In this document: one piece after another, positions 16,983 to 45,904 of the stretch
Numbering within the stretch: the first letter of the stretch is position 1
Layout: every line of letters begins with the position of its first letter
Notes under the pieces: generated by a model
Databases searched by the model: none
Told to the model about the DNA's origin: nothing
The model's input: the letters and a program-made list of their open reading frames with translations, nothing else
Made by a program: the position numbers and the translations under genes
Assembly: GCA_047495785.1 (NCBI GenBank)
Contig: JBLDXI010000034.1
Location: forward strand, 496,001 to 560,000
DNA: 64,000 bases
Origin: Lepidodermella squamata
Taxonomy: Eukaryota; Animalia; Gastrotricha
Direction: 5' to 3'

Positions 16983-19900
16983 GCTGCGCGGAACGAGGGT
17001 GCGACGCAGCATTTATGGCAGTCGCATATCACGGTGTTGGTGATATTCTCCTCATCATAGTCACTTTCGACTGCGTAGATCGCCGTTATTAGACAGCCTT
17101 GCATAGGGCTGAGAACTGTTATGCCAGCATTGCTGCCGATGACAAGCGCAAGACTAGCGTTAACCGCAAGCGGCAAAAGTCAATCTGCTCATCATCATCT
17201 GGAAAAATCCTATCGAATGACAATCGAAATACTCGTGGTCGTGATGTTGTAATTGCGTGATTTGTAACTGTTAACAGAAAACTCGACCGAATTACTTCAT
17301 GTCTTAAACTACTCTGAATTAGTCATTTTCACGTCCCGATCGATAGCAGGTGTAATCTTGAGCATAAGCAAAACTATAAATTAATGCGCCGTGGCTTAAT
17401 GAGCCATTCGGGCGGAAGCTTACTTACGGCTCTGAAAATACGGTATAACGAGATGGAAAAGCTCATTTGTTGAACTGCCATTTTTTCCATGCGGTGAATT
17501 GATCGCGCAATTGTTCTCATGTGACGCGATTTCGCCAGTAATATTTTGAGCCTCAGATAATATCAATGCATTCACATTAGCAAACTTTGAGCCAAGATGA
17601 GAGAAGCAATAATAATAAATCGGATATTTGTTATTACAGCGGCTTTCCTTGATAAAAATTGGCATACTTTACTTAAAGTTGGATCGTATGTGTCAACATA
17701 GTTTGTTTCTATTTCCGGCACACTATTATGGCACGCAAGTTGCGACATTCGCCTCGAATCTATTTTTAAAGGATGAACTTTTGAACTACTCATGGCGGCT
17801 ATTTGCTGTTTCTGATATCAGCAACAGCATCATCATCACTGGAAACTCAGCACTAAGAGAAAAACCTGCTAAAAGTTGCGAAAATTCGAAAATTTACAAA
17901 AAATCAGTGGAATGGTTGCCGCCTGTAATATTTATATCAGCTTGTAAGGGAGATGTTTATATGTAAGTGGGCAAAAATTTAGCCAAATCGGCTATGAAGC
18001 TATTTGAGCCTAACATATTAATTTATCTGTGCTAGCTTCTTAACACCAGTTCGGCGTTCCGATCTGAAGAGGAAGGTTCACGGTGGTCTGTGATCTGATT
18101 ACTTGGGGGTTTGACGTTGTTCGAATGAAAATGAAATTACCGGTATGAACTAGCGAGATGAAGCTAGGATGAAGATTCCGTCAGATCCCATCGTAATATT
18201 TTGAGCATAAAAAATTAATTGATCAGAGTGCACACTCACGCTTTCTTCTTGAAACAAAAACTTTTTTTTGCGTGCGCGCATCTTTTTTGAAAACATGCAT
18301 GTTTACTCCTTGTAAATTGTCATACCCATTTAAAATTTCTGATAAGGTGGATAGCTCATTTTCACTGTGCCACTAGTCTCTATTGCAATTGCTATTATAA
18401 GTAGGATACTTCATGAAACAAAAATGTCGGCATGCCGACCAATTGGCTGAAAAGATAAAATCCTGACCAAGCTGATTCTACTGGCACACCACTGATATGT
18501 AGTATGATACACGAGCTTCTTATCGCCGAAGCTTGACAAAAATTGTGTTTATTTCACGCTTTTATCCTGTGTCATATTTCGAAAGGACTATTTTTCGTCT
18601 CAGCCGTAAGCATCAGCTTGTTTAGATTGAATATGAATTCAGGGACGTATCGGTCTATTTCGGAGTTCTCTGTTATTGAAACCTTGCGTCATGCCACCTT
18701 ACGAACATCTATGTTGTGCGAACGTAATAGGAGTCCTGCAGAACGCGTGGTTATAAAAAAAACCAACTTGACAGACCTTGAAAAAACCTTCAAAGGAATT
18801 GCTGAACTTCTCCGCAAAAGAGTGAGTTTGAAGTGCTACCACTTAAGATTCAACATTATAATGAGGATAGTGAAGTTCTTGAATGATAAAGGTGCGATTA
18901 GCCTGGGGAAACGGCCGGAAAACTCCCAGAATTTATAATTGAAGTATATTTTAAAATGGTCGCAGGATTCGCAAATGATCAATATCAGCCATGACAACAT
19001 AGCCAGGATTTCCGGCTGTTTCGAAGGTTTGCAATCCATTTTTTGATACCAACATTAGCTAAAGGTTTTATATCACAGAGGAATTGCAAGGTTCTAACAT
19101 GAGGTATTTGGTGATCGAGTTTTGCGAGGGTGGAAGTTTCGAAAGCCTGATCACGACGGAGACTGCACCAATCCCTGAAATCATGCTTCAAATATGGTCG
19201 CGCCAACTCGTATCAGCTTTGGCTTACCTTCACGGCCGAAGAATTGTTCATCGCAACATAACGACAAGCAATGTACTTCTAACAGGAGACCGCGGCACAG
19301 CGAAACTAGCTGATTTGGGAATCGTCCAGAAATTAGACGCGTAAGATTGACAAGGGGCATATTTTCATCGATAAATTCGATATCCAATATTCAAACTAGT
19401 GGGTCACGAATGACCGCTCTAGCTGCGTGGTACCCTTCCGCTCCTGAGGTATTGAAAAGCGAACCGAAATCCCCTGCAAGTGATGTTTGGTCGTTGGGAT
19501 TTTCGCTCTTCAAACTAGCCAACTTCCACGAACCAGTATGAGAATGATAAATGATCTCAAATAATTGGTTGCTAAGTTTTTTTTTATCTTTTCCAGTTTG
19601 TCTCTACGCCAAGTATACTGATGTGCCGGGGGAACCCCCGTACTGTCGCCATTCGTGTCGTGGAAATCTTTGTTTCTTTGTTTGTATGTATGCACCCATG
19701 TGCACTGCTTGACTACACGCCTACGTACACGCCTACATAAACGCACACCTTATGTGCACACCATGACTACACGATTTGAATTTGAATTTGAATTTGATAT
19801 TTTGATATTGTATGGGATTTGTCTCCCCTGTTTATGTGATCTCAATGAACAATAAATATTTGAATTTAGAATTTAGTATGCACCCATGCGCAATGTGTGT

Positions 19901-22577
19901 GTAAGGCTTGACTACACGCTTACATAACGCAATCTGCAAAACATGACTACCCGCCTACATCACTCCACAGCCCACAGCCAAAAAGGAAGTCATTCCAACC
20001 ACTAGCCACTCGAACCTTAAATTGCCGGGTAAACCTTTGCGCACGGACGGAAAGTAATTGCTTCTTGCATCGCGATTTTTAGTTCACACTTCACACAGCG
20101 CTCATATCATACAAGAACATCATACAAGGCCACTTGATACGAACCAAACCGTAAACCTTAGCCCAAGTTCATGCCGTCGTGAACGTTTGAATTTCGAATA
20201 GTGTAAGCAATGAAGTGGTGCAGGACAGCTTGTTCAGAACCCATGTGTTTTTCCGCAGCTTTTCTTGCCGCTTGCCGAATTTTTACGAAGTCTTACGAAA
20301 GTTTGCCGTGAAAGCCTCGTAAAACTGCGGCAAAATGTGCATTACATTACATATATGCGGGGCAGTAGCTCGTTCGAAACTGTGTGCTTCGATGCTCCGG
20401 AGTCAACGGCAAAATTTCGTAAAAGACTTCATAAAAACGTCTCCGTCTCTAATGGACGATCAGCATGTGTCCGAATCGATGGCAGATTCAGTGTCTTGTG
20501 TCTTCTTAGTCTTGCAAATCAAGAAAGAATTCGACTGCTTCTTCATACAGTTCATCGCCTAGTTCCTGAGCACGGGGGTCATCATTTGCATTGCAGATGA
20601 TGACCCTCGTGCTCTCTCCATACTGATATCCGGACTCTCACTCGCCAACTCTTGCTCTTCGATCGCTGTTTTTCGGCGAAACTCCTCAGCCGCGTCCTAA
20701 CCCAAATAGGTAATATTCCTGGTGGCGATCTAGTTTCCGCCGAACTGACTCTAATGAAGGGCAATTTTCCAATAGACGAAGAGCAGGAATAGCTGAATCC
20801 TGTTTGTCAAGAAACTCCTCCGGGTCTCTGAAACTATTATTGAGCAACAAAGCAAGCCGCGAATAGAGCTCTAGTTTATCAGCGTCTGAATCAAATGAAC
20901 GATAATCTCGAAGTCGAGGGCCGTAAATCTTAGCGACATGTACTTCTCGCCGCAAATATTTCTCAAATCGTATTTCTCAAATCAAATACGTCCTTGTTGG
21001 TGTAACGCTCCTGGAACTCAATGACATTTTGTGATTCGCTCAACTCGACAAACGAATTCGGTCCAAGAGTGGAGTGTGTGGAGAAACACGAAAGTGTATC
21101 GTTGACTCCGGAGCATTGAAGCACACGGTTTCTGAACGAGCTGCGAGCTGCCCCGCACAACTTCATTGCCTACGATCTCTTGCCTACGAGTTTGTTGCGG
21201 CAACTTTTGCTCTTTTTCATCGTATACTGCCGGCTATTATCGAGCATTTCCCGTGCTCTCATATAAAAACCAAATCTGCCGTGATTTTAATTTGTCGCGA
21301 GTTTACGAGTTTGCTAAAACAAAATTACTAGGTGATCGGAAGCAGCTGATACATTATGTGACCACCCGCAAGTAGGGTTTCGACAAACGGTTTTGATTGG
21401 TGGGCGATCTAAACCGCGGCAAATTCAAACAATGATTTTTTAATTTTTAAAATAATGAATTTTTTTTTTATTTCAACTAATAAAACATAATCTTTATATG
21501 TAACTGTGAAAATTTTGCGGCAACTGGTGATTTTGAAATAGCTGGCGCCACCTGGACTTGCCAAACAGTAAGGGATTGAAAGTTAAACCCGCCATTGTGA
21601 AATCTGACAATCGTTGTCGATCACATCAATTTTTACTTGCATGACTTTGGTACCTTTTGCAACTTTTACAACTACAATCATGAAATCAAACGTTCAATAA
21701 ACAGTTTGAGATTGTTACTATTCTCAGTTTAATGTTTCTTTTTTTTTGGCCGCCCAATATTTTTGAAGGCGCATGACATAAACCTGCATCACTTGACGTG
21801 GTAGTGATTCAGGAAGTGCCGCGCACGTCATCCTCACTATTCTCTTTAGAAGCTTTTGTCGCAATTCCATTGAGTCTGCCGACAGCGCATGGATGTTGAT
21901 ACCCTTCATCAACAAGGGGAGAACATGTGTTGATGTGACTAGACGAATGAATTTATAGTTACGAATCATTGACTTTCGCATTTTAAACTGTTACCATGTG
22001 CATAAGTGGTTAAGTGCCCCACAACTGCCACAAATTTTCGCTCAAAGACCTCGAAATCTGCTTCTGGGTCGCCAGCTAGATCGTTCTTCTCGATGCGCTC
22101 AAAAATTCGCCCCGTACTTAGCAACAGCTCGTCACAATTGTTCAAAAATGCTCGCAAGTCAGTCCGTCTCTTCAAAGATATATGACCATTCTCTAGCTAT
22201 TATCGTTAGAGCAAATTAGCATACTTTTTCCTCAAACCCTCTCTCCAGCGCCTTACGTCGAACCTCATCCAGCGTCCAATCTTTTCGTACAACAACATTA
22301 TGCTTTTGCAGCCATCTTTCAAATACTGCGATGTCCCGGCCATACAAGCCTTTAACCATCTCGACCTCCCAGTCTTCACCCAGGTATTGCATGAGGGATC
22401 CATTCTTTGCAAGGGTCTTCAAAGCCTGCGAATTGTAAGTTCTCACTCATGCTCACTTATAATTACTTGAAAATTACCTCAGTTGTTGCGTGGTGGTTCG
22501 CTCGCTTTATCGCGATTTTCTGATTCGCTTCTTTTGGCGTCGAGACAGTTAGCTTTTTACTGCTGCGCTTAATAACA

Positions 22578-23115
22578 CATTATGCTTCCGTATTGCAGGA
22601 TCAAAGTCCACGTTGTCACGTGGTATGAATAGCTAGTTCTGAGGCGTTATTTTTTTCGTTGCTTCGTCGTTTCGTCGTTTCGTCACTTCGTCATCTTTTA
22701 CAAAAAAACTGACGAAAGAAAAAAAAACGGGGAAAAAAGGAGGATTCGAACCCGGAACCTTAAGGATCAGAACCATGGATTTAAGCCACTATACAATAGG
22801 AGGCTTTCTATCTACAACCGGCAAAAAACGCTTTAGTGTAGCGTTCGTTTAGTATATAAACATGCCGAACGAAGATGACTACCATGACCCAGCACTATTG
22901 CTCAGTGGTTTCGCCTTGTGCGTCATAACCCAATGGTCCCGGGTTCGAATCCTCCTTTTTCCCCGTTTTTTTTTCTTTCGTCAGTTTTTTTGTAAAAGAT
23001 GACGAAGTGACGAAACGACGAAACGACGAAGCAACGAAAAAAATAACGCCTCAGAACTAGCTATTCATACCACGTGACAACGTGGACTTTGATCCTGCAA
23101 TACGGAAGCATAATG
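22578..23115. mobile_element. Foldback MITE related to RAG1-like element 2, with tRNA-like units
   Basis: About 180-bp near-perfect inverted arms starting CATTATGCTTCCGTATTGCAGGATCAAAGTCCAC; 2-bp TSD CA; excision restores the host transposase frame. Confidence 0.9.
22891..22960 (+). other. tRNA-derived (tRNA-iMet-like) Pol III unit inside the MITE
   Basis: A-box-like TTGCTCAGTGG, CATAACCCA anticodon region, B-box GGTTCGAATCC, followed by a T-run; acceptor stem not intact. Confidence 0.55.
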
Positions 23116-25039
23116 CAGCGACAACGTTTTCATAGGCTGTAGTTAAATGCACCTCGCGTAACTTCGTCAGGATCTAAAGTTATGATGATTATATTGTTTT
23201 GTTTCAAATGTCTTATCATACCGCTATAAGTTCACACTCAGTTATGTTGAGTTTGAGGTGCAAGTCACAGGGCACGATCTCAAATAGGTGCGGTGGTAAC
23301 TGAATTAAGGGCAAAAATGTGGCGTGCCAGCCTAGTTCGCATCGTTCGCGTTCATTCAAGTTTGCTAACAAATCTTCCACCAAATCGTAGCGCCTGAGTT
23401 CGCCTTCTGTACCTGTTACAAAGTTTTTCGTGCAGAACAAGCAGCCGAAATTAGCACTATGATGCCCGCATGCTAATAGCCAAACCATCATTGGATAATC
23501 GCAGCAAAGTATCAATTTAAAGTTGTATTTTTTCCCGTCATGTTCCACGCCGTTCAACACCCATTCCACAACCTCGTCGACTACTGGGCGAATATATTCG
23601 CGCGCAGTCTCGTAGCTTTCCTTGCCCTCATAAATGAGCATCTGGAATTCTTCTTCCAGGCCAATTTTATCTTTTTTATCAGCGAAGCACATAGTAGCTT
23701 GTACCCAACCGTCACTGACGTCTGTGCGTCCGGGTGTGCCATCAACTTGGAAGCGTATTTCATTGATTTGTTCTGTGCTCAAATAACCGATTTCCACCCA
23801 TTTCGGCAGATATTCGCGCAAGCTAATGCGAACGCCTTTTTCAGTTTCAGCATCTACTCAAAGGACATTTTTATCTGGAATGTGTATAATTCATAATATT
23901 TACCGCTTGGGACCTTCAGTATATCTAGCATAGTTGCCAATGATCGCCGCGCTTTACGCAGCGTTCGTCGCGAGATATTCTCATTTCCGACCGTTTTTGC
24001 AATTGGCAATGCCGCTCTCGAAGAAACAATTTTATCTGCCATCTCTTCCGCGACCCTGTTTGCGATACTTTTTTTAAATATTATTTATGCTAACTCATAC
24101 TCACCTGTTGCACAAATCATTTTTGGTGATTTCCACGTTTTCACCTGGTGGGACGCTAACTGATACTTCTCCAACGTCTTTGAGCCGCATCGTCATTGTC
24201 ATGCTTTCCACTTCCTGATCTCCCAAATAATGGCGAAAAGCCGCGCTGCTTTTAACACCGTCCAGTATCACTTTAATTGCTTCCTTGGCTCTTGTCACCT
24301 TCTGCCAGCGGCACAGCGTGGAATACGGCTTGCGTCCCACAAACTTCAGCTTCGGCCTGATAACCCGCGTGTAGCGCAAAATTGCTGGTTGTCCATTTAC
24401 ATCTTGTCCGATAGGAATATTATTATTCGGTACATCCATATTTTACCTGATACCTAAACGCAAAATCGATTTTAGTAATTTTATTGCTATTGATAATGAC
24501 ACAAGACGTCGACATTATAAGCCACATCCGAATTGCCCTCTGTAGGTTTCTGTCTAGCCGTAGAAAGCTTCGACGATTTCGCGTGGACAACTCTCGCGCT
24601 GCTAGCATTGAAGTTATCTCATCGCGTCGTAGTTTTATGAGACATTTTTCTCGGTAGTTTCTTACTCATCTATCAATTTTTCACAAAATCTCGCATTAGA
24701 TTTGGATCTATCCGCCGTCGAATGGTTATAAGCTACGAAGAAATGTGCGATGTTTGCGGCGACTTGTCAGGCCTAAACCGACAGTTTTTAGTTAGCGATT
24801 ATCCTTTTTTTCTCAGATGGTATCGCACGTGAGTTCTTTCAACGTACCTGAGCATTTGTTAGTTGATAGATCAAAAAATTAGGGACGAATCTAAATCAAT
24901 TGGAGCTGTTCGTATTCGCTTCCGCTACCGCCAAATTTAACTTACCTCTTCAACTTACTTCATCATCTCTAAATCCATCTTTAAATTAGTTTGCATTGCA
25001 ATTCTTTAAATATTCGCCGTTTTTTAGAAATTTCGCCTT

Positions 25040-25841
25040 ATTTTATCAAAATATGGTCAAGCTAAAAGTTTTTTGCGGCTCCGTCGCAAAAATTATTATA
25101 TTTCCGGCGGCCGAACTTGATTCGCTGGTTTCTCTTCGCGGAAAAATCGGCGCCAGTTTTCGCCTCACCAGCGATTTTTCACTGTCGTACCGGGACGGCG
25201 ATGACGACTTTCTCCTCACAGAGGAGTCTGAGCTGGTCGACGCCATCAACGGCCAGGCGGAGCTGCGGATATCTGTTGGCCCGCCCGTCCCGGCAGCAAT
25301 CGACATGACGATCGACTTCAACTCGACCAGGACCTGCAAATCCCCAGTCAAGTCGGTGTTGAAGTCACCTGGGCGTGTGTCGTTTGCGCCGCCACTTGGA
25401 TCTGCCCCGACACCCGGCTCCGCGCCTACTTCAACTTCGCCCCCGAACCAGCCTGTATTGCCCCGGGAATACCAGGCCTTCTTGAGCGCCCTCCTGGCCA
25501 GCAGCCAACGTCAGCCGGCCCCTCCGGCCAGTCGCCATTTCCCTGACGAACAGCACGCCGCAACGCCACGCCGTTCGAAGCGGCCCGAAAAAGGGGCATC
25601 CGGGCTTCCCGCACCTGGAACACGTTACAGCGACGCAGAATACACGGCGTTCGATCGCTACCTCGACTGGCTCGGCGAGCATGATGCCATCTCGTTCGAG
25701 TCGATCGACGACTTCGCCCTTGAAGACGATTTTGATTTTTGGCGGTGCTTCGGAACCCGTTCGCATTCCGCGGTACTAACGAAGCTGACGGCCTACCGCC
25801 GCGAACGTCGCGTACCTGACGCCACCCGCCGCAGGCGCTGA
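25040..25841 (+). CDS. PB1-like domain, Pro-rich linker and C-terminal Myb/SANT-like domain; second gene of RAG1-like element 1
   Basis: VKLKVF...FSLSYRDGDDDFLLTEESEL (PB1 Lys and acidic OPCA-like motif); RYSDAEYTAF...FGTRSHSAVLTKL; intact GC-rich ORF (start approximate). Confidence 0.65.
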
Positions 25842-28528
25842 TTTATTCGGTCAAAAGACAATTTAATTGTAATTATTTCCACCTAATTTGAGACGTTCTG
25901 CCGGAGAACAGCCAAAATATTCATTTTTATTTGAGACATTATTTTAGAAACAGCTATATAAACGATAGTTAGAAACGATATGAATTTTTGAAATATAAAA
26001 TTGAGGAATTTTTTCCGAATATAGTAATTACGGTATTAGAGTATCTATTAGAAGAGAAGTAAAAAATCAAAAACAATGAATACTCTGGCTGTTTTCTGGC
26101 GGAGCGTCTGAAATGATTAGAGGATTATCTAAATGCGCAGAGATCTGCATTTTATATCAAATCTCACTTGATGATTAATTTATCTCTCAGGTCCATTATT
26201 TCGTAGTGCACCGACTTACTGACTGGCGTCTAGCTTTCAATGTTCAGTTTTTGTAGTGACACAGTGTCAGTTTGCTCATCAAAAATTCAGATTATGACAT
26301 TTACCTCGACTTGAATGATAATCGGCCGTAAGCCTGATGACTTGGCAATAAAATGATATAAAATGATATAAAATTTGAGGGATTTCAACTAACAGTTCCG
26401 TGAAAATTTCTGCTACTTCTGAAAATTATGTGTGGTTGAGTTTCTTTGTTGTTTTTATACTAGAATGCCTGGATATAACCTGTGATATCGGTTTTCTCGC
26501 GTTGTGCCTCCGTTATTGTTAAACTTACTTGATAATGCGCTTCACATGGTGCGTATCACTCAAGTAGATAATATCTTTGTCTTTCATGTGTTGCTTCCAT
26601 CGATTTTTCCAATCCTTACGATTTTTTATTGATTATTACGCACGTGCATCTCGAGGCAAAAAACAGCTCTTATTTTGAATAAAAAAATACAGTTTGAATC
26701 ACCCGCGTTTATTTGAATGAACCAATAGGAGAAAGGCTTTTTTCCCGCCTTTAAAGTGGTCACATAATGTACTTTCCGTTTGGTATGACAATGGGGCGAA
26801 ATCTTTATGCGTGGCACTAGTCTCTAACAACGTCGCCGCTGTTGGCTTGAAATGATGATGCAAGTTTCGGGCTGACTTCCACGCATCAATTGCGTCGACG
26901 AAGTCTCATTTTTTGACCTGGGACCGAAACACGGACCCTTCTCCTTTCGGCGACGGCGTAATAGTTGTCGACTCGTCAAGCTGATTGTCGACTACAACTT
27001 ACTGATAATGAAGTAACACGTAACATGTGACCTCTTCGACATAGGTATCGATAGCTCGTGCTTTGTTTTTTATTGTTACTTCTACTCATAAATAACAATC
27101 TTATCCACGTGTAAACATTAAACTGCTTGATGTTACGGAATTTAGTAGGAATTTACGAAAATGTGAACAATGGGTTCCCCCGGCGCTACTGTAGCAGCTA
27201 CGCTGCTGCTGTTGCCAATAAACTTATGAGTTTGACACAGCAGCCTCCGACTGAAATCTATAACATTTTTAGTAATAACATGAAACCATTTGACGAGTCC
27301 CGCGGTTATTCCGATGAATTTCGGGAATTTGTTATGTCTATGCTCGCTGAGCTTCCTAGGATTCGCCCGACGTCTAGTCAGCTTCGATTCAGTGCATTTT
27401 TGCTGAATTCGGCACCTATGCGGTATACAAAGGTATGATCGATTTTCCCCACCTGACATCTGCATTCTTGCAATCATGCATGTTCCTTTTATTCTTCAGC
27501 CAGACCAAACATCCGTCGAACCCAAGCCAGAGATTGTTAAGGTAGCTACGAATTATTTTACACTTGATTCAGGTGTTAGTAATTGAAATTACCAGGAGTT
27601 ATTTGACTGTGTATGGCCGAAGAAAGATGTTTTGAAATTGGTGCAGCTACTGTCGAATAGGAACCTCGGTCTTAGCCCTGATTGCAAAGACGAAGAGGGA
27701 TTTCCACTGTTATACCATGCTGCTCGAACCGGCTACACCGAAGTTGTGGAAACTCTTGTCAGGCGATTCAAGGCTGACGTTGAAGTTCGTACTGCAATTG
27801 GCCAGACACCACTGTATGCCGCCGTCCAGTTTGGCCACCTCGAGGTAGCGAGGATGTTGGCTCGCGAGTTAAACGCCAATGTTAATTCGGCCGATAATAG
27901 GGGATGGACGCCACTGCACTTCCCCACCTACATTGGCCAAGCCGACATTGTGAGGCTATTGGCTGGCGAGTTCAAGGCCGACGTGAATATTGCCGAAGAA
28001 CATGGCTTTACACCACTGTACGTCGCCGCCTTCACTGGCAATGCCGAGTTGGTGCGGATTTTGGCTGGCGAGTTCAACGCCGACGTGAATTCTGCAGATA
28101 AAGATGGCGTGACGCCATTGTACATGGCTGCCCATAACGGCCACGTCGACGTGGTAGAGACGCTAGCTGGCCAATTTAAAGCCAACGTGAACGCTGCATG
28201 TAATAATGGCAAGACGCCGTTGATGGCAGCCGCATATGAGGGCCATCACCATGTTGTTGAAGTTCTTCTTACAAAATTCCGAGCTAATATCGACGCCGTA
28301 GATCGCCGAAATAAGACAGCCATAGATTGGGCCACGAACTGCAAAGCTGGTGATAACAAGAACAAGACTATCGAAATACTCGAGCGGACGAAGTCAAAAT
28401 AGCCTGCCGTAGTACACCAATCTAGCCTCTAGTCAGATTTACTCTTAACTTCACTGGAAACCAAGATGAAAAGTCATGATCATCGTTTTTGGCAAAATGA
28501 TTGAAACACTCGCGCTGGTGTCGTAATC

Positions 28529-41699: not shown

Positions 41700-42239
41700 G
41701 CTGCGCGGAACGATGGTGCAGCGCTGCATTTATGGCAGCCGCATATCGCGGCCATCACGGCGTTGGTGATATTCTCCTCCCGAAGTTCCTAGTCACCTTC
41801 GCCATAATAACGCAGCCTTGCATAGGGCTGAGAACTGTTATGCCAGCATTTCTGCCGATGTCAAGCGCAAGACTAGCGAAAAACTCAAGCGGGAAAAGTC
41901 AATCTGCCCATCATCTGGAAAAATCCCATCGAACATCTTAGTCTGGATTTGCAGTGTCAAAGTCCACTTTTTTTGCTGTTCAATGCGTCATGGTGGTGGC
42001 GGTGGTCGGAGCGGTCGGAGCGGTCGGAGCGGTCGGTGACCGTGGTCATTATTAGCATGAAAAAAATTGTTTTTCTCATCTTCCGTCATTTATTGGATTT
42101 TCTAAATAAATAAAAAGAGCCTTTTTTGGGGTAATAAATTACTATCATACAAATATGAATTAAAATCTTTGAATCAATCTGAACATTTGCAGAAGTAATT
42201 ATTATTGATTCTATAGGTTTCCAGAATTTCTTTCATCAC

Positions 42240-44175
42240 ATGCCGGCGACTTACTCTGAGCCGACCATAGTTGATCAAGATGCAGCTAGGCGCAGCTTGT
42301 CTCGAATGAAAGGCCCCGTTTCATCAATTTCCAACCGATCAGCTGTACATCGAGCTGAGGTGGTGCAGAATCTTTTCTTGCAGTCGTTACCTGTGGCGTG
42401 GCCTTTCAATGCAGCTATGGACGGGGCTGTTATTAAAAAAGCCCAATTAGTTGTAGAATACGAAAACATAGGCGTGGTTGCGTCGGAATGGCCATTGAAA
42501 AACGAGTCTAAACAGGAACAGGCTGGAGAAAAAACGCAGAGGTTAAGGTTGAATTGTCAACTGGTAATATTACAGCTTGATTATTATGTTTAGTTTGGTT
42601 CGCCTCGGCTTGAAACACGGCATTAATGCTTCCACCCTCATGACCATTAAAAATGAAATTGGCTACCAAAGTGTAACAAAAGAAAACTTCTATGGAGTTC
42701 GAAAGCGCCTTGCTATGCTTCACCCAATAACATCAACTCACCGCGGATTAGGCGCATATCGCTCGGTAGATTCAATCGTTAAAAAAATGATTGTTCGAGG
42801 CGACTTGGAAAAAGACGTTGTTAATGATCTACGGCTTCAGGTAAATCAAAATTACATATGGTCCTTGCTAGGGCAAAGTCAAATTGAACAGGTGGATGGC
42901 ATGGCAGCTAGGACGAGCATGGCAGATGCAACAGTCAGTTCATACATTTGTGCTGCTAAGACAAAGGCCAAAGTGGGCTGCGCTGGTGAATATCAGCTGT
43001 CAATGTACCAGGGAAGCGAATCTTCCGAGATGTTCAGGAAGTTTTTACAGCCAACCATCGGCGAGCTCTCGAATATCGTTCGAGATGGCTTGAAGATCGG
43101 GGATGATTCTTACGATTTTCGATTATTGGTTTGCTGTGACTACCCAGCTACTGTCAAGCTCTTTGGCTGTGGTCACCAGGGCGCCGATTTTCGTTGCGTA
43201 ATCTGTGAAAGGAATATTAAAAAGCTCAATGTCCTTTCGCGGAAACGCCGATTCGACTCATACGAAAATTCATTTAAAGGAAAGCTTGGTTGGTCGAAAG
43301 ATTTTGCCCCGATGATTCGTTTGGGTCCTGACAAACTTCTGATTTTACCTGATTTCTTCCACATGAAGGTCAATATTGCTCGTCAACTTATTGCTAAAGT
43401 AGGTATTCCTTCCAACAACTTGAAAGTTCAATATTCTATTTAACAATAGATCATACGTGTTCTGAAAAGCCATGGGTTCCGCGATGCTATGAACGATCTT
43501 GTTTCTTTCTTGAAAACCAACTCGAAAAAGCCAAAATTTTCTATCGAGACCAAAGCCACAAAACGAGGTGTCATTAGTGTGCTTATCAAAAATTCCAATC
43601 ACTACGGCATTTCCAAGGTATGAACCTAATTTTGTGTTATATGAAATAAATTAGTTCCTAACTGAAATTTAAACTAGGCATTTGCTGAATTAGCCAAGAG
43701 AATGATTGGAAAGCCTCTATCCGAGTCATTTTTCCTACCGGCTAACTTCCTCAACTCAGTCAAAACTTCAGGTCGTAACACTCGCAGGGGATCTATTCAG
43801 TCTCAAAGCAGCCGTCAGAAGCTACTGCTGTCTTCATTAAAGGATTTGCGAACCTTGTGTCTATCCACCTTGATGGTATTTCGGGACATCGAGCTGAACC
43901 ATGTGACGTCAACAGCTAAAATTATGGCTAGCTGCTACGAAAAGATATGGCATCGAACTATTGGACCAGTTACTTCTTACGCTCATTTGCTCGGGTGCCA
44001 TGTTTACGAGCTTCTGGAGAAAGGGGTCGATTTGGCAAAACTCTGCACTGAGAGCATTGAGTTGAGCAACAAGAAAAGACGCAGAACGATGGACTGTTCA
44101 ATTTCAAACAAATACTCCAAACCGTGCCAGATTTTGAAAATCGAAAACATGAAGGAAAATTTGAAGCTGATTTGA
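42240..44175 (+). CDS. RAG1-core/Transib-like DDE transposase, ~573 aa, 5 exons
   Basis: Exons 42240-42541, 42594-42840, 42892-43398, 43450-43617 and 43678-44175 join in frame; LQVDG, CCDY, CVIC, DFFHMKVNI, YAHLLGCH, TESIELSNK. Confidence 0.85.
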
Positions 44176-44342
44176 AAATATTTGAAGTACCTAGAAACTG
44201 TGTTTCATTTGATAAATAAAAAGTTTGAACTATGTCATCATGTCATCATTTTATTTCCGCATTAATCTTTGTCGACGTAGCTTTATTTCTTCCTCAACTT
44301 TGATTTATCATAGGCAGGAGGCAAAAGATCACAGCGTAACCT

Positions 44343-45412
44343 TTACTTGTCAACCTCATAACCATCACGATCAGCATTATAGAACAAACGGAACTTGTCC
44401 TTAGCGTCCCACTGAAAACGAAACACGCCCGCTCTTATAAGGCGGTGGATCACAGGTATTTGACGGGCAATGGCGCCAGTTGTTCTACCCAACTCTTTAT
44501 CGAGGTCACGATCTGTTGGTGTCTTTGCCATCCAAAATTCGATCATTTTAGCTGTAACACTTTCAAATTTTATCCCAGACCTGACAACATAGGCGAAACA
44601 ATGCCGAATACGATTTCTTTCATCGGGACTCCACTCGGTTCTGCTCTTCGTTGATTTAGCTGTGAGATTAAACACTATTTTACACAATTTGCACAGCAAA
44701 ACAAAGGCTTACAATTTGAATAGCTGCTCGCCACATTTTGTATATGGTTCCATGACATTTTGAAAGCATAACTTGAATCTAGATCGACTCGGTCGCTGTC
44801 AGGGACGCTGAAGAACAACGGTCCTGGAGCAAACGAATTGCCTGATTTACCGCTCTTCTTGCGCATATCACGTGAAACCGCTCGATTGGATTTAGTCGAT
44901 TGGGTCGGCTCGATTGGTTCACGTTCATCGGGCTCATGTTGCTCATCAGCATCGTCCTCGCCATCATCCTCGCTATCGTCCTCGCCATCACCCCCGTCGT
45001 CATCCTCGTCATCGCTCTCATCTTCATCCTCCTCATTGTCCTCGTCATCTTCCGATGCATCTTCCTCGCCATCAACAACAGCATCACCCACGGCACCATC
45101 CTGGCCATCATCATGACCATCGACCTCGTGATCATCTCTGCCTTCAACTCCATTACGCTCCACCTCCATTTCTTGGCCGCTAACACCTTCCGCTTCGCCA
45201 GTTTTTCGCTGTTTGGCTACCCGCGGCAACTTCAACGCGACCTCTTCAGCAACAGGAGCGGCCTTTCTTCGTGTGCTTGTCTCGTTTTCTCGCGCACTCT
45301 TTCGCCGCGCATCGCTCTGCTTGCGATTGCGATCTTTCTCCTCAAGAATTGCCGCATCTTTTGTGGCTTGAATTGCCGCTTCCTTTGCTGCGATTTTCCG
45401 CGTTTTGGTCAT
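44343..45412 (-). CDS. Second gene of RAG1-like element 2: basic N-terminus, acidic tract, C-terminal Myb/SANT-like domain (~338 aa, 2 exons)
   Basis: Exons 45412-44713 and 44659-44343 join in frame; RTEWSPDERNRIRHCF...ELGRTTGAIARQI. Confidence 0.7.
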
Positions 45413-45904
45413 GAAAAAAAGAATATTTAAATAAGTAAATAATGGGGAAATAATGCTCCCGAGAAATTATTAGATGATAAAAAATTCCCGACCTAATCGA
45501 CCACCCCACCGCCCCGACCACACATCATGAAGCAAAAAATGTGTGGACTTTGACACTGCAAATCCAGACTAAGATGAATGACAATCGAAATACTCGTGCT
45601 CGTGATGTTGTAATTGCGTGATTTGTAACTGTTTACAGAAAATTCGACCGAATTACTTCATGTCTTAAACTACTCTGAATTAGTCATTTTCACGTCCCGA
45701 TCGATAGCAGGTGTAATCTTGAGCATAAGCAATACTATAAATTACTGCATCGCGGCACAATGAGCCATTCGGGCGGAAGCTTACTTACAGCTCTGAAAAT
45801 ACGGTATAATGAGATGGAAAAGCTCATTTTTTGAACTGCCATTTTTTCAATGCGGTGAATCGATCACGCAATTGTTCCCATGTGACGCGATTACGCCAAT
45901 ATTA

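Follow-up and report, generated by a model that had tools for sequence, protein, structure and literature searches.

TNPA, the second protein encoded by the En/Spm transposons, binds subterminal DNA and brings the two ends of the element together. En/Spm (CACTA) is a member of the CMCT clade of transposons, which also includes Mirage, Chapaev, Transib, Plavaka, ESTA as well as Lanisha, and which is characterized by the motifs C(2)C and H(3-4)H, by CA..TG ends and by a target site duplication (TSD) of 2-5 bp (PMC12730594). As for mobile elements bearing a PB1 domain, the only published examples that we found are the PB1-bearing Mutator-like elements (PB1-MULEs) of plants and the MUSTANG-B genes derived from them (PMC4948706). 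Here, we describe a transposon in a stretch of 64,000 nucleotides from the gastrotrich Lepidodermella squamata (GenBank assembly GCA_047495785.1, contig JBLDXI010000034.1, positions 496,001 to 560,000), hereafter called the window, to which all coordinates refer. An earlier note, made from the letters of the window, had proposed a RAG1-like transposon with a Myb-like partner gene in this region, and had compared it with another transposon of the window, element 2 (41934-45576). In our reading, to which we assign a probability of roughly 80%, the segment 21352-26769 represents a single copy of a young cut-and-paste CMCT transposon that carries two genes, one for the transposase and a divergent orphan partner gene.

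Ends of the element and insertion site

The element spans 5418 bp (21352-26769), or 4878 bp if a miniature inverted-repeat transposable element (MITE) nested in it is subtracted. Its terminal inverted repeats (TIRs) are 14 bp long and perfect, and begin with CATTATG, which is located at 21352 on the + strand and at 26769 on the - strand, giving the ends CATTATG...CATAATG. The left TIR (CATTATGTGACCAC, 21352-21365, + strand) and the right TIR (26756-26769, - strand, reading GTGGTCACATAATG on the + strand) are part of a 16-nt perfect pair in the inverted-repeat listing, which consists of TA followed by CATTATGTGACCAC and thus includes the two flanking copies of TA (21350-21351 and 26770-26771).

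The junctions were compared with contigs of the public DNA run X1, the sole public run containing the element; no RNA run contains it. It should be noted that the depth figures given for contigs throughout this text are not copy numbers. One of the contigs represents the empty site: it extends to 21325, continues with the 13 letters of 21337-21349, and is joined straight to 26770, with one TA only. Another contig, of 3206 nt, has its first base exactly at 21352. Because of the perfect pair of TIRs, the empty-site contig and the contig beginning at 21352, the element is defined as 21352-26769, with TA as its 2-bp TSD.

These ends differ from those of the earlier note, which had drawn a 7.6-kb transposon at 19618-27191 with TIRs of its own, had considered its transposase decayed, and had seen in the Myb-like partner a conserved part of a two-component system. 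An inverted pair (22 nt, 82%) is indeed present at 19616-19637 and 27172-27193, and the homology of a host kinase gene to its paralogues is interrupted over roughly the same span. However, in quality the pair does not exceed the chance pairs that the listing also contains, and its outer half aligns with the host kinase paralogues. Its core, CCGGGGGAACCC, lies in the repeat that surrounds the element and is a near-palindrome, which can therefore be read both as a direct repeat and as an inverted one. Considering also the perfect TIRs, the TA duplication and the empty site at 21352-26769, the open frame of the transposase, and the C-termini of the two partner proteins, which were unrelated in every test (see below), the 7.6-kb model is barely tenable. 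A further candidate terminus, CATTCGTG at 19650 paired with CAATG at 27172, was dropped in favour of the perfect pair formed by CATTATG, in view of the contig with the empty site.

The transposase gene and its nested MITE

The transposase gene is located on the - strand (21724-24439). Its seven exons (24439-24105, 24055-23904, 23853-23222, 23173-23116 plus 22575-22478, 22425-22225, 22169-21995 and 21938-21724), which were spliced by hand and checked with a script, encode 621 amino acids in a frame that is open after removal of the MITE and of one TG. The gene had been considered decayed, yet the exons splice to an uninterrupted frame and the MITE is the sole lesion; the contrast previously drawn between a decayed transposase and an intact partner does not hold either, as the transposase frame is also open apart from the MITE. 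An apparent stop after exon 2 and an apparent frameshift between 'YAH' and 'THV', which could be taken as signs of decay, are both short GT-AG introns. All the motifs that had been listed for the protein (FQVDG, CCDYP, CGH..C..C, H.K.NI, NHH and YAH..HV) were found in it, and in the spliced 621-residue frame the modelled catalytic and zinc-binding residues are D200, D281, C300xxC303, H550(4)H555 and E575.

The MITE is a palindrome of 538 bp (22578-23115) with perfect arms of 160 nt, according to the inverted-repeat listing; it has CATTATG...CATAATG ends, is inserted in exon 4, and is accompanied by a duplication of TG. As judged from the sequence, it inactivates the transposase gene in the present copy. 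The 3206-nt contig of run X1 that begins at 21352 omits exactly 540 nt (22576-23115), with one mismatch to the window across 3.2 kb; near-identical copies without the MITE therefore exist in the same organism, which makes the family a young one, and one that is probably still active.

Some other features of the MITE may be recorded. Its first 7 nt (CATTATG) are identical to the terminus of the element, while its positions 16-34 (TTGCAGGATCAAAGTCCAC) match the TIR of element 2 at 17 of 19 nt. The centre contains a tRNA T-arm-like sequence, GGTTCGAATCC, on each arm. The contig depth is very high (1300-2600), indicating that the MITE is abundant.

The transposase is colinear with that of element 2, as had been claimed: the cores of the two proteins show 36% identity over 177 residues (E 3e-37), and a second, later block shows 29% identity over 58 residues (E 1.7e-4). 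The claim of two shared introns was likewise borne out, since the introns flanking the ILTKL...NHH exon occupy identical positions in the two elements, and are of phase 0 in both; each element has one private intron in addition. These comparisons support the placement of the element as a second, divergent member of the transposase lineage of element 2.

Class and fold of the transposase

A Pfam search with the present transposase gave no match, either to RAG1 or to any other family, and a word-index search with its 201-residue exon returned nothing. The transposase of element 2 matched Transposase_21 (tnp2 of CACTA) with E 0.005, which is below the cut-off. When 1.84 billion representatives were searched exhaustively with the profile, only 47 proteins were retrieved at E <= 1e-3, none of them with an identity above about 37%. 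The close relatives are exon-sized fragments on metagenome contigs of less than 2 kb, with no neighbouring genes, and the distant, full-length relatives show sub-threshold matches to Transposase_21 and DUF4218 (25-27 bits for P0012 and P0039, cut-off 28.6). Two of the longer relatives, P0012 and P0033, are encoded at single-gene CACTA-like loci with no PB1-like gene beside them, and their distance from the present element is too great for them to be informative; P0033 (627 residues in a single open reading frame (ORF); locus L005, GCA_008802855.1, VVIM01001485.1, 6001-7884) lies beside a gene for a pogo/Tc5-type transposase.

The fold of the 210-residue core exon, aligned with 42 relatives, was modelled with a predicted local distance difference test score (pLDDT) of 90.7. 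In a comparison of this model with the PDB, all 48 matches at E <= 1e-3 were RAG1, BbRAGL of amphioxus or HzTransib of Helicoverpa, with template modelling (TM) scores of 0.45-0.57 and root mean square deviations (rmsd) of 6-10 Å. In the ESM Atlas, the model matched clusters annotated as Transposase_21/DUF4218, Plavaka and DUF1258, with TM scores of 0.70-0.78 and rmsd of 3-4 Å. When the family profile was aligned with RAG1, the second D fell on D708 and the CxxC motif on C727/C730, with an E value of only 0.07.

The catalytic and zinc-binding residues listed above are those characteristic of the CMCT clade. The same is true of the ends, that is, the CATTATG...CATAATG termini and the TA duplication backed by the empty site. 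A duplication of 2 bp is also found in Mirage and ESTA (TA in ESTA); in the present element one insertion was read, while the MITE duplicated TG and element 2 AA. On the basis of motifs and modelled fold, the transposase is a DDE enzyme of the CMCT clade with a RAG1-type core fold. The earlier label 'RAG1-like' is therefore right at the level of the clade, considering the clade-defining motifs, the CA..TG ends, the 2-bp TSD and the RAG1-type fold; it does not describe the nearest structural neighbours, which are of the CACTA/Plavaka type, and the models place the element nearer to this side of the clade than to Transib.

One could alternatively propose that the element is a true member of the Transib/RAG lineage, that is, a direct relative of the ancestor of RAG1 in which the PB1 gene takes the place of RAG2. 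Every significant fold match in the PDB belongs to RAG1, BbRAGL or HzTransib, the weak PDB sequence matches of the profile are to RAG1, and by our own reading CATTATG agrees with the Transib-type heptamer CACAATG at 5 of 7 positions. However, the RAG1-type core fold is common to the whole CMCT clade, and since, to our knowledge, no CACTA-type transposase structure has been solved, the PDB cannot discriminate between a Transib and a CACTA placement. The CACTA-type models of the Atlas fit better (TM about 0.75 at 3 Å for the Transposase_21/Plavaka type, vs about 0.5 at 6-10 Å). In addition, the TSD is of 2 bp and not 5, the terminus CATTATG has T as its third base and does not conform to CACNNTG, there is no Pfam match to RAG1 while element 2 weakly matches Transposase_21, and the partner is not Kelch/RAG2-like. 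Membership of the Transib/RAG lineage is accordingly very unlikely, and we continue to regard the element as a CMCT transposon close to CACTA/Plavaka.

The partner gene

The partner gene (25053-25841, + strand) is a single ORF of 262 codons plus stop, so that the previous claim of an intact partner stands. It is arranged head to head with the transposase gene across an intergenic region of 613 bp (24440-25052), as deduced from the gene models, and this region presumably holds a bidirectional promoter. The contigs of run X1 cover 25142-26663 without differences, which shows that the ORF belongs to the repeated unit, rather than being a piece of host DNA at this locus. A word-index search of 5.8 billion clusters revealed no homologue of the protein, and therefore no alignment was available for the prediction of its fold.

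A PB1-like N-terminus had been suggested for this protein, and the searches of Pfam, of PDB sequences and with Foldseek were weak but agreed with it. The domain would comprise approximately residues 1-90 (25053-25322, + strand). The only Pfam match of the partner is PB1 (PF00564; E 0.0011, 19.3 bits, cut-off 23.6), and the only PDB sequence match at E <= 10 is the PB1 domain of Arabidopsis NBR1 (AtNBR1; E 0.0054), which extends across the OPCA stretch. In the single-sequence model of the partner (pLDDT 42), the N-terminal elements follow the order beta-beta-alpha-beta-beta-alpha-beta, as in PB1, and the top 11 Foldseek matches of this model are all PB1 domains (best E 0.057). The N-terminus also contains a lysine in strand beta-1 (VKLKV) and an acidic, OPCA-like run (YRDGDDD..EESEL). 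From sequence and model, a PB1-like nature of this region is probable, not proven.

The possibility that the 262 codons are open merely by chance, and do not form a gene at all, may be considered here. It would be in line with the lack of RNA evidence and of homologues, and with a low 'recognition' value in the Atlas. On the other hand, about 0.04 such frames would be expected in the six frames of 5.4 kb according to our estimate, three independent libraries rank PB1 first, and the predicted secondary structure is in PB1 order; a chance frame is thus highly implausible.

The C-terminal part of the partner is predicted to be helical, with an Arg-rich tail (25620-25838, + strand; helices at residues 194-209, 218-224, 229-233 and 238-252, pLDDT approximately 58-66). 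This region had been described as Myb-like, a description that found no support in Pfam, in PDB sequences or in language-model searches: neither this protein nor the partner of element 2 matched the Myb, SANT or MADF models of Pfam even at E up to 10, the C-terminus had no PDB sequence match, and language-model searches with the whole partner and with its C-terminus gave only leads scoring below 0.8, none of them Myb-like. An alignment of the C-termini of the two partners, which the earlier note had put forward as a check, gave E 12 in BLASTP and a Smith-Waterman score of 25, compared with a mean of 26.6 for shuffled sequences (p 0.62), and the 'I.FES' that they share is not significant. The idea that two lineages have kept a homologous Myb-like partner is consequently unsupported, the C-termini showing no similarity in these tests and neither protein giving a Myb/SANT signal. 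The two elements have in common no more than that each carries a second gene of some kind.

The partner gene of element 2 splices to a protein of about 338 residues, whose N-terminal half is basic and then extremely acidic, and whose C-terminus is helical. It gave no Pfam match, no homologue in the word-index search (nor did its C-terminus, searched separately), and only language-model leads below 0.8.

A more serious alternative concerns the role of the present partner, which could be passenger cargo, namely a fragment of a host PB1 gene captured by transduplication and with no role in transposition. PB1 is a signalling domain of host proteins, and transduplication has been discussed for the PB1 of plant MULEs together with its sporadic distribution (PMC4948706). 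Moreover, the partner has no relatives at the loci of other elements, and that of element 2 is unrelated. Against this, the ORF is complete, lies head to head with the transposase gene across 613 bp, and belongs to the repeated unit, for which the X1 contigs show no differences here. Since no host gene among the 5.8 billion clusters resembles the partner, any capture would not have been recent. Overall, we consider the cargo hypothesis unlikely, though less so than the other alternatives discussed above, and prefer to see the partner as a functional second gene of the transposon.

With regard to contig depth, the summed value is 288-313 over 25010-25385, which codes for the PB1-like region, vs 171-182 elsewhere in the element, and one variant contig replaces 24941-25163. 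The raised depth at 25010-25385 may reflect subfamilies that have diverged, or a PB1 segment that is shared with other repeats.

The surrounding repeat and the split kinase gene

The local setting is eukaryotic: the GT-AG introns are short, at about 50 nt, and kinase-ankyrin genes occur in tandem. The element is inserted in an older, unrelated, high-copy repeat of about 2.2 kb, which hosts the element and is not part of it. The left portion of this outer repeat (19624-21349) is recognized from the end of the homology to kinase paralogues near 19610-19623, from its high contig depth, and from empty-site copies elsewhere; the right portion (26772-27218) extends to the point where the kinase homology restarts, at 27219. 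At 19625-19637 and 27172-27184 the outer repeat carries an inverted pair of 13 bp, GCCGGGGGAACCC, and it includes an internal foldback at 20203-21173. Its flanks, TACTGATG and TACTGTAG, are similar and might represent a decayed 8-bp duplication.

A host protein-kinase gene on the + strand runs through 19084-19537. Four paralogues within the window are homologous to it up to near 19610-19623 and then again from 27219 onwards, which implies that about 7.6 kb of foreign DNA splits the kinase; this corresponds roughly to the span drawn in the earlier note as the transposon. The two pieces of the gene, 19084-19623 and 27219-27438, are separated by the nested insertions right after a short exon, and in this haplotype the gene has probably become a pseudogene or is mis-spliced. 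It belongs to a tandem series of at least five kinase(-ankyrin) paralogues (near 5.4, 15.3, 30.1, 39.8 and 53.9 kb).

Discussion

The way in which the two proteins of the element might cooperate can be outlined as follows. Contacts between PB1 domains are established head to tail through a basic surface, which includes the beta-1 lysine, and an acidic surface, the OPCA motif. As the putative PB1 module of the partner would have both surfaces, the protein could self-associate head to tail through this predicted beta-grasp module, while its helical, Arg-tailed C-terminus would contact either DNA or the transposase. In this way, the partner may act as an oligomerizing architectural cofactor, comparable to TNPA of En/Spm or to the Myb-like ORF1 of PIF/Harbinger; such a role in transposition is suggested by analogy with these systems. 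Synapsis of the ends driven by PB1, as put forward in the earlier note, is likewise a hypothesis. A bolder version would regard the PB1 polymerization module as an independent accessory of mobile elements in this animal, recruited here as a separate cofactor gene by a CMCT transposon and nucleating the transposition complex on or between its ends. Sharing of PB1-coding DNA with other repeats would be compatible with this idea, considering the rise in depth at 25010-25385, but we regard it as speculative and distinctly improbable.

Several observations weigh against the reading of the locus as a two-gene CMCT transposon with a PB1-like partner. All the PB1 scores are under the formal thresholds, the model of the partner, at pLDDT 42, is not a confident one, and the word-index search provided no homologue of the protein. 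A search for subterminal repeats to which a DNA-binding cofactor might attach gave only short two-copy matches not above chance, and no array. The target site was read for one insertion of the element, a single public DNA run contains the element and no RNA run does so, and the copies are too similar for a test of purifying selection.

The present results correct the annotation of the locus: in place of a 7.6-kb transposon, it contains an element of 5.4 kb that lies within an older repeat. The intact, MITE-free copies mean that a natural copy of the family is directly testable. The models place a rare lineage of RAG1-fold transposases nearer to CACTA/Plavaka than to Transib, which tempers claims about the origin of RAG. 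The unusual feature of the element is the PB1-like accessory gene, present as a separate gene in an animal CMCT element, while the only published cases of PB1 in mobile elements that we found are plant Mutator-like elements. If the proposed mechanism is true, a polymerizing cofactor for a CMCT transposase would represent a new way of assembling a transposition complex, and would offer a testable reason for the frequent occurrence of second genes in the clade (TNPA, RAG2 and the partners of both elements described here).

With the CMCT clade in general, the element shares the 5'-CA..TG-3' ends, a TSD within 2-5 bp and the RAG1-type core fold; it differs in the lack of a family-level sequence match and in having a separate PB1-like gene. 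Element 2 is the closest relative as far as the transposase is concerned. Both elements begin with CAT and have a 2-bp TSD (TA in the present element, AA in element 2), but element 2 has TIRs of 34 bp and genes arranged tail to tail, compared with TIRs of 14 bp and head-to-head genes in the present element, and its partner is acidic, without PB1, and unrelated to the present one.

Among the systems with a second protein, En/Spm (CACTA) likewise combines a CMCT transposase, TNPD, with a second element-encoded protein, TNPA. However, TNPA and TNPD arise from one transcript by alternative splicing, whereas the present element has two divergent genes; the TSD is 3 bp in En/Spm and 2 bp here, and neither a TNPA-type Pfam match nor a subterminal repeat array was seen here. 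PIF/Harbinger is a two-gene cut-and-paste system as well, whose Myb/SANT-like ORF1 is a small accessory protein needed by the transposase, but its transposase belongs to an unrelated superfamily and the present partner is without a Myb/SANT signal. The similarity to ProtoRAG and RAG1-RAG2 consists in the presence of two genes and of a DDE enzyme that has the zinc motifs and the core fold of RAG1; the 5-bp TSD, the ends with a CAC heptamer, the Kelch-type RAG2-like partner and the convergent layout of ProtoRAG are not shared by the present element, whose partner matched neither Kelch nor PHD in Pfam and only weakly PB1. Finally, the PB1-MULEs belong to the Mutator superfamily, occur in plants, and have PB1 tied to the transposase gene, whereas in the present element, an animal member of the CMCT clade, the PB1-like domain heads a separate gene.

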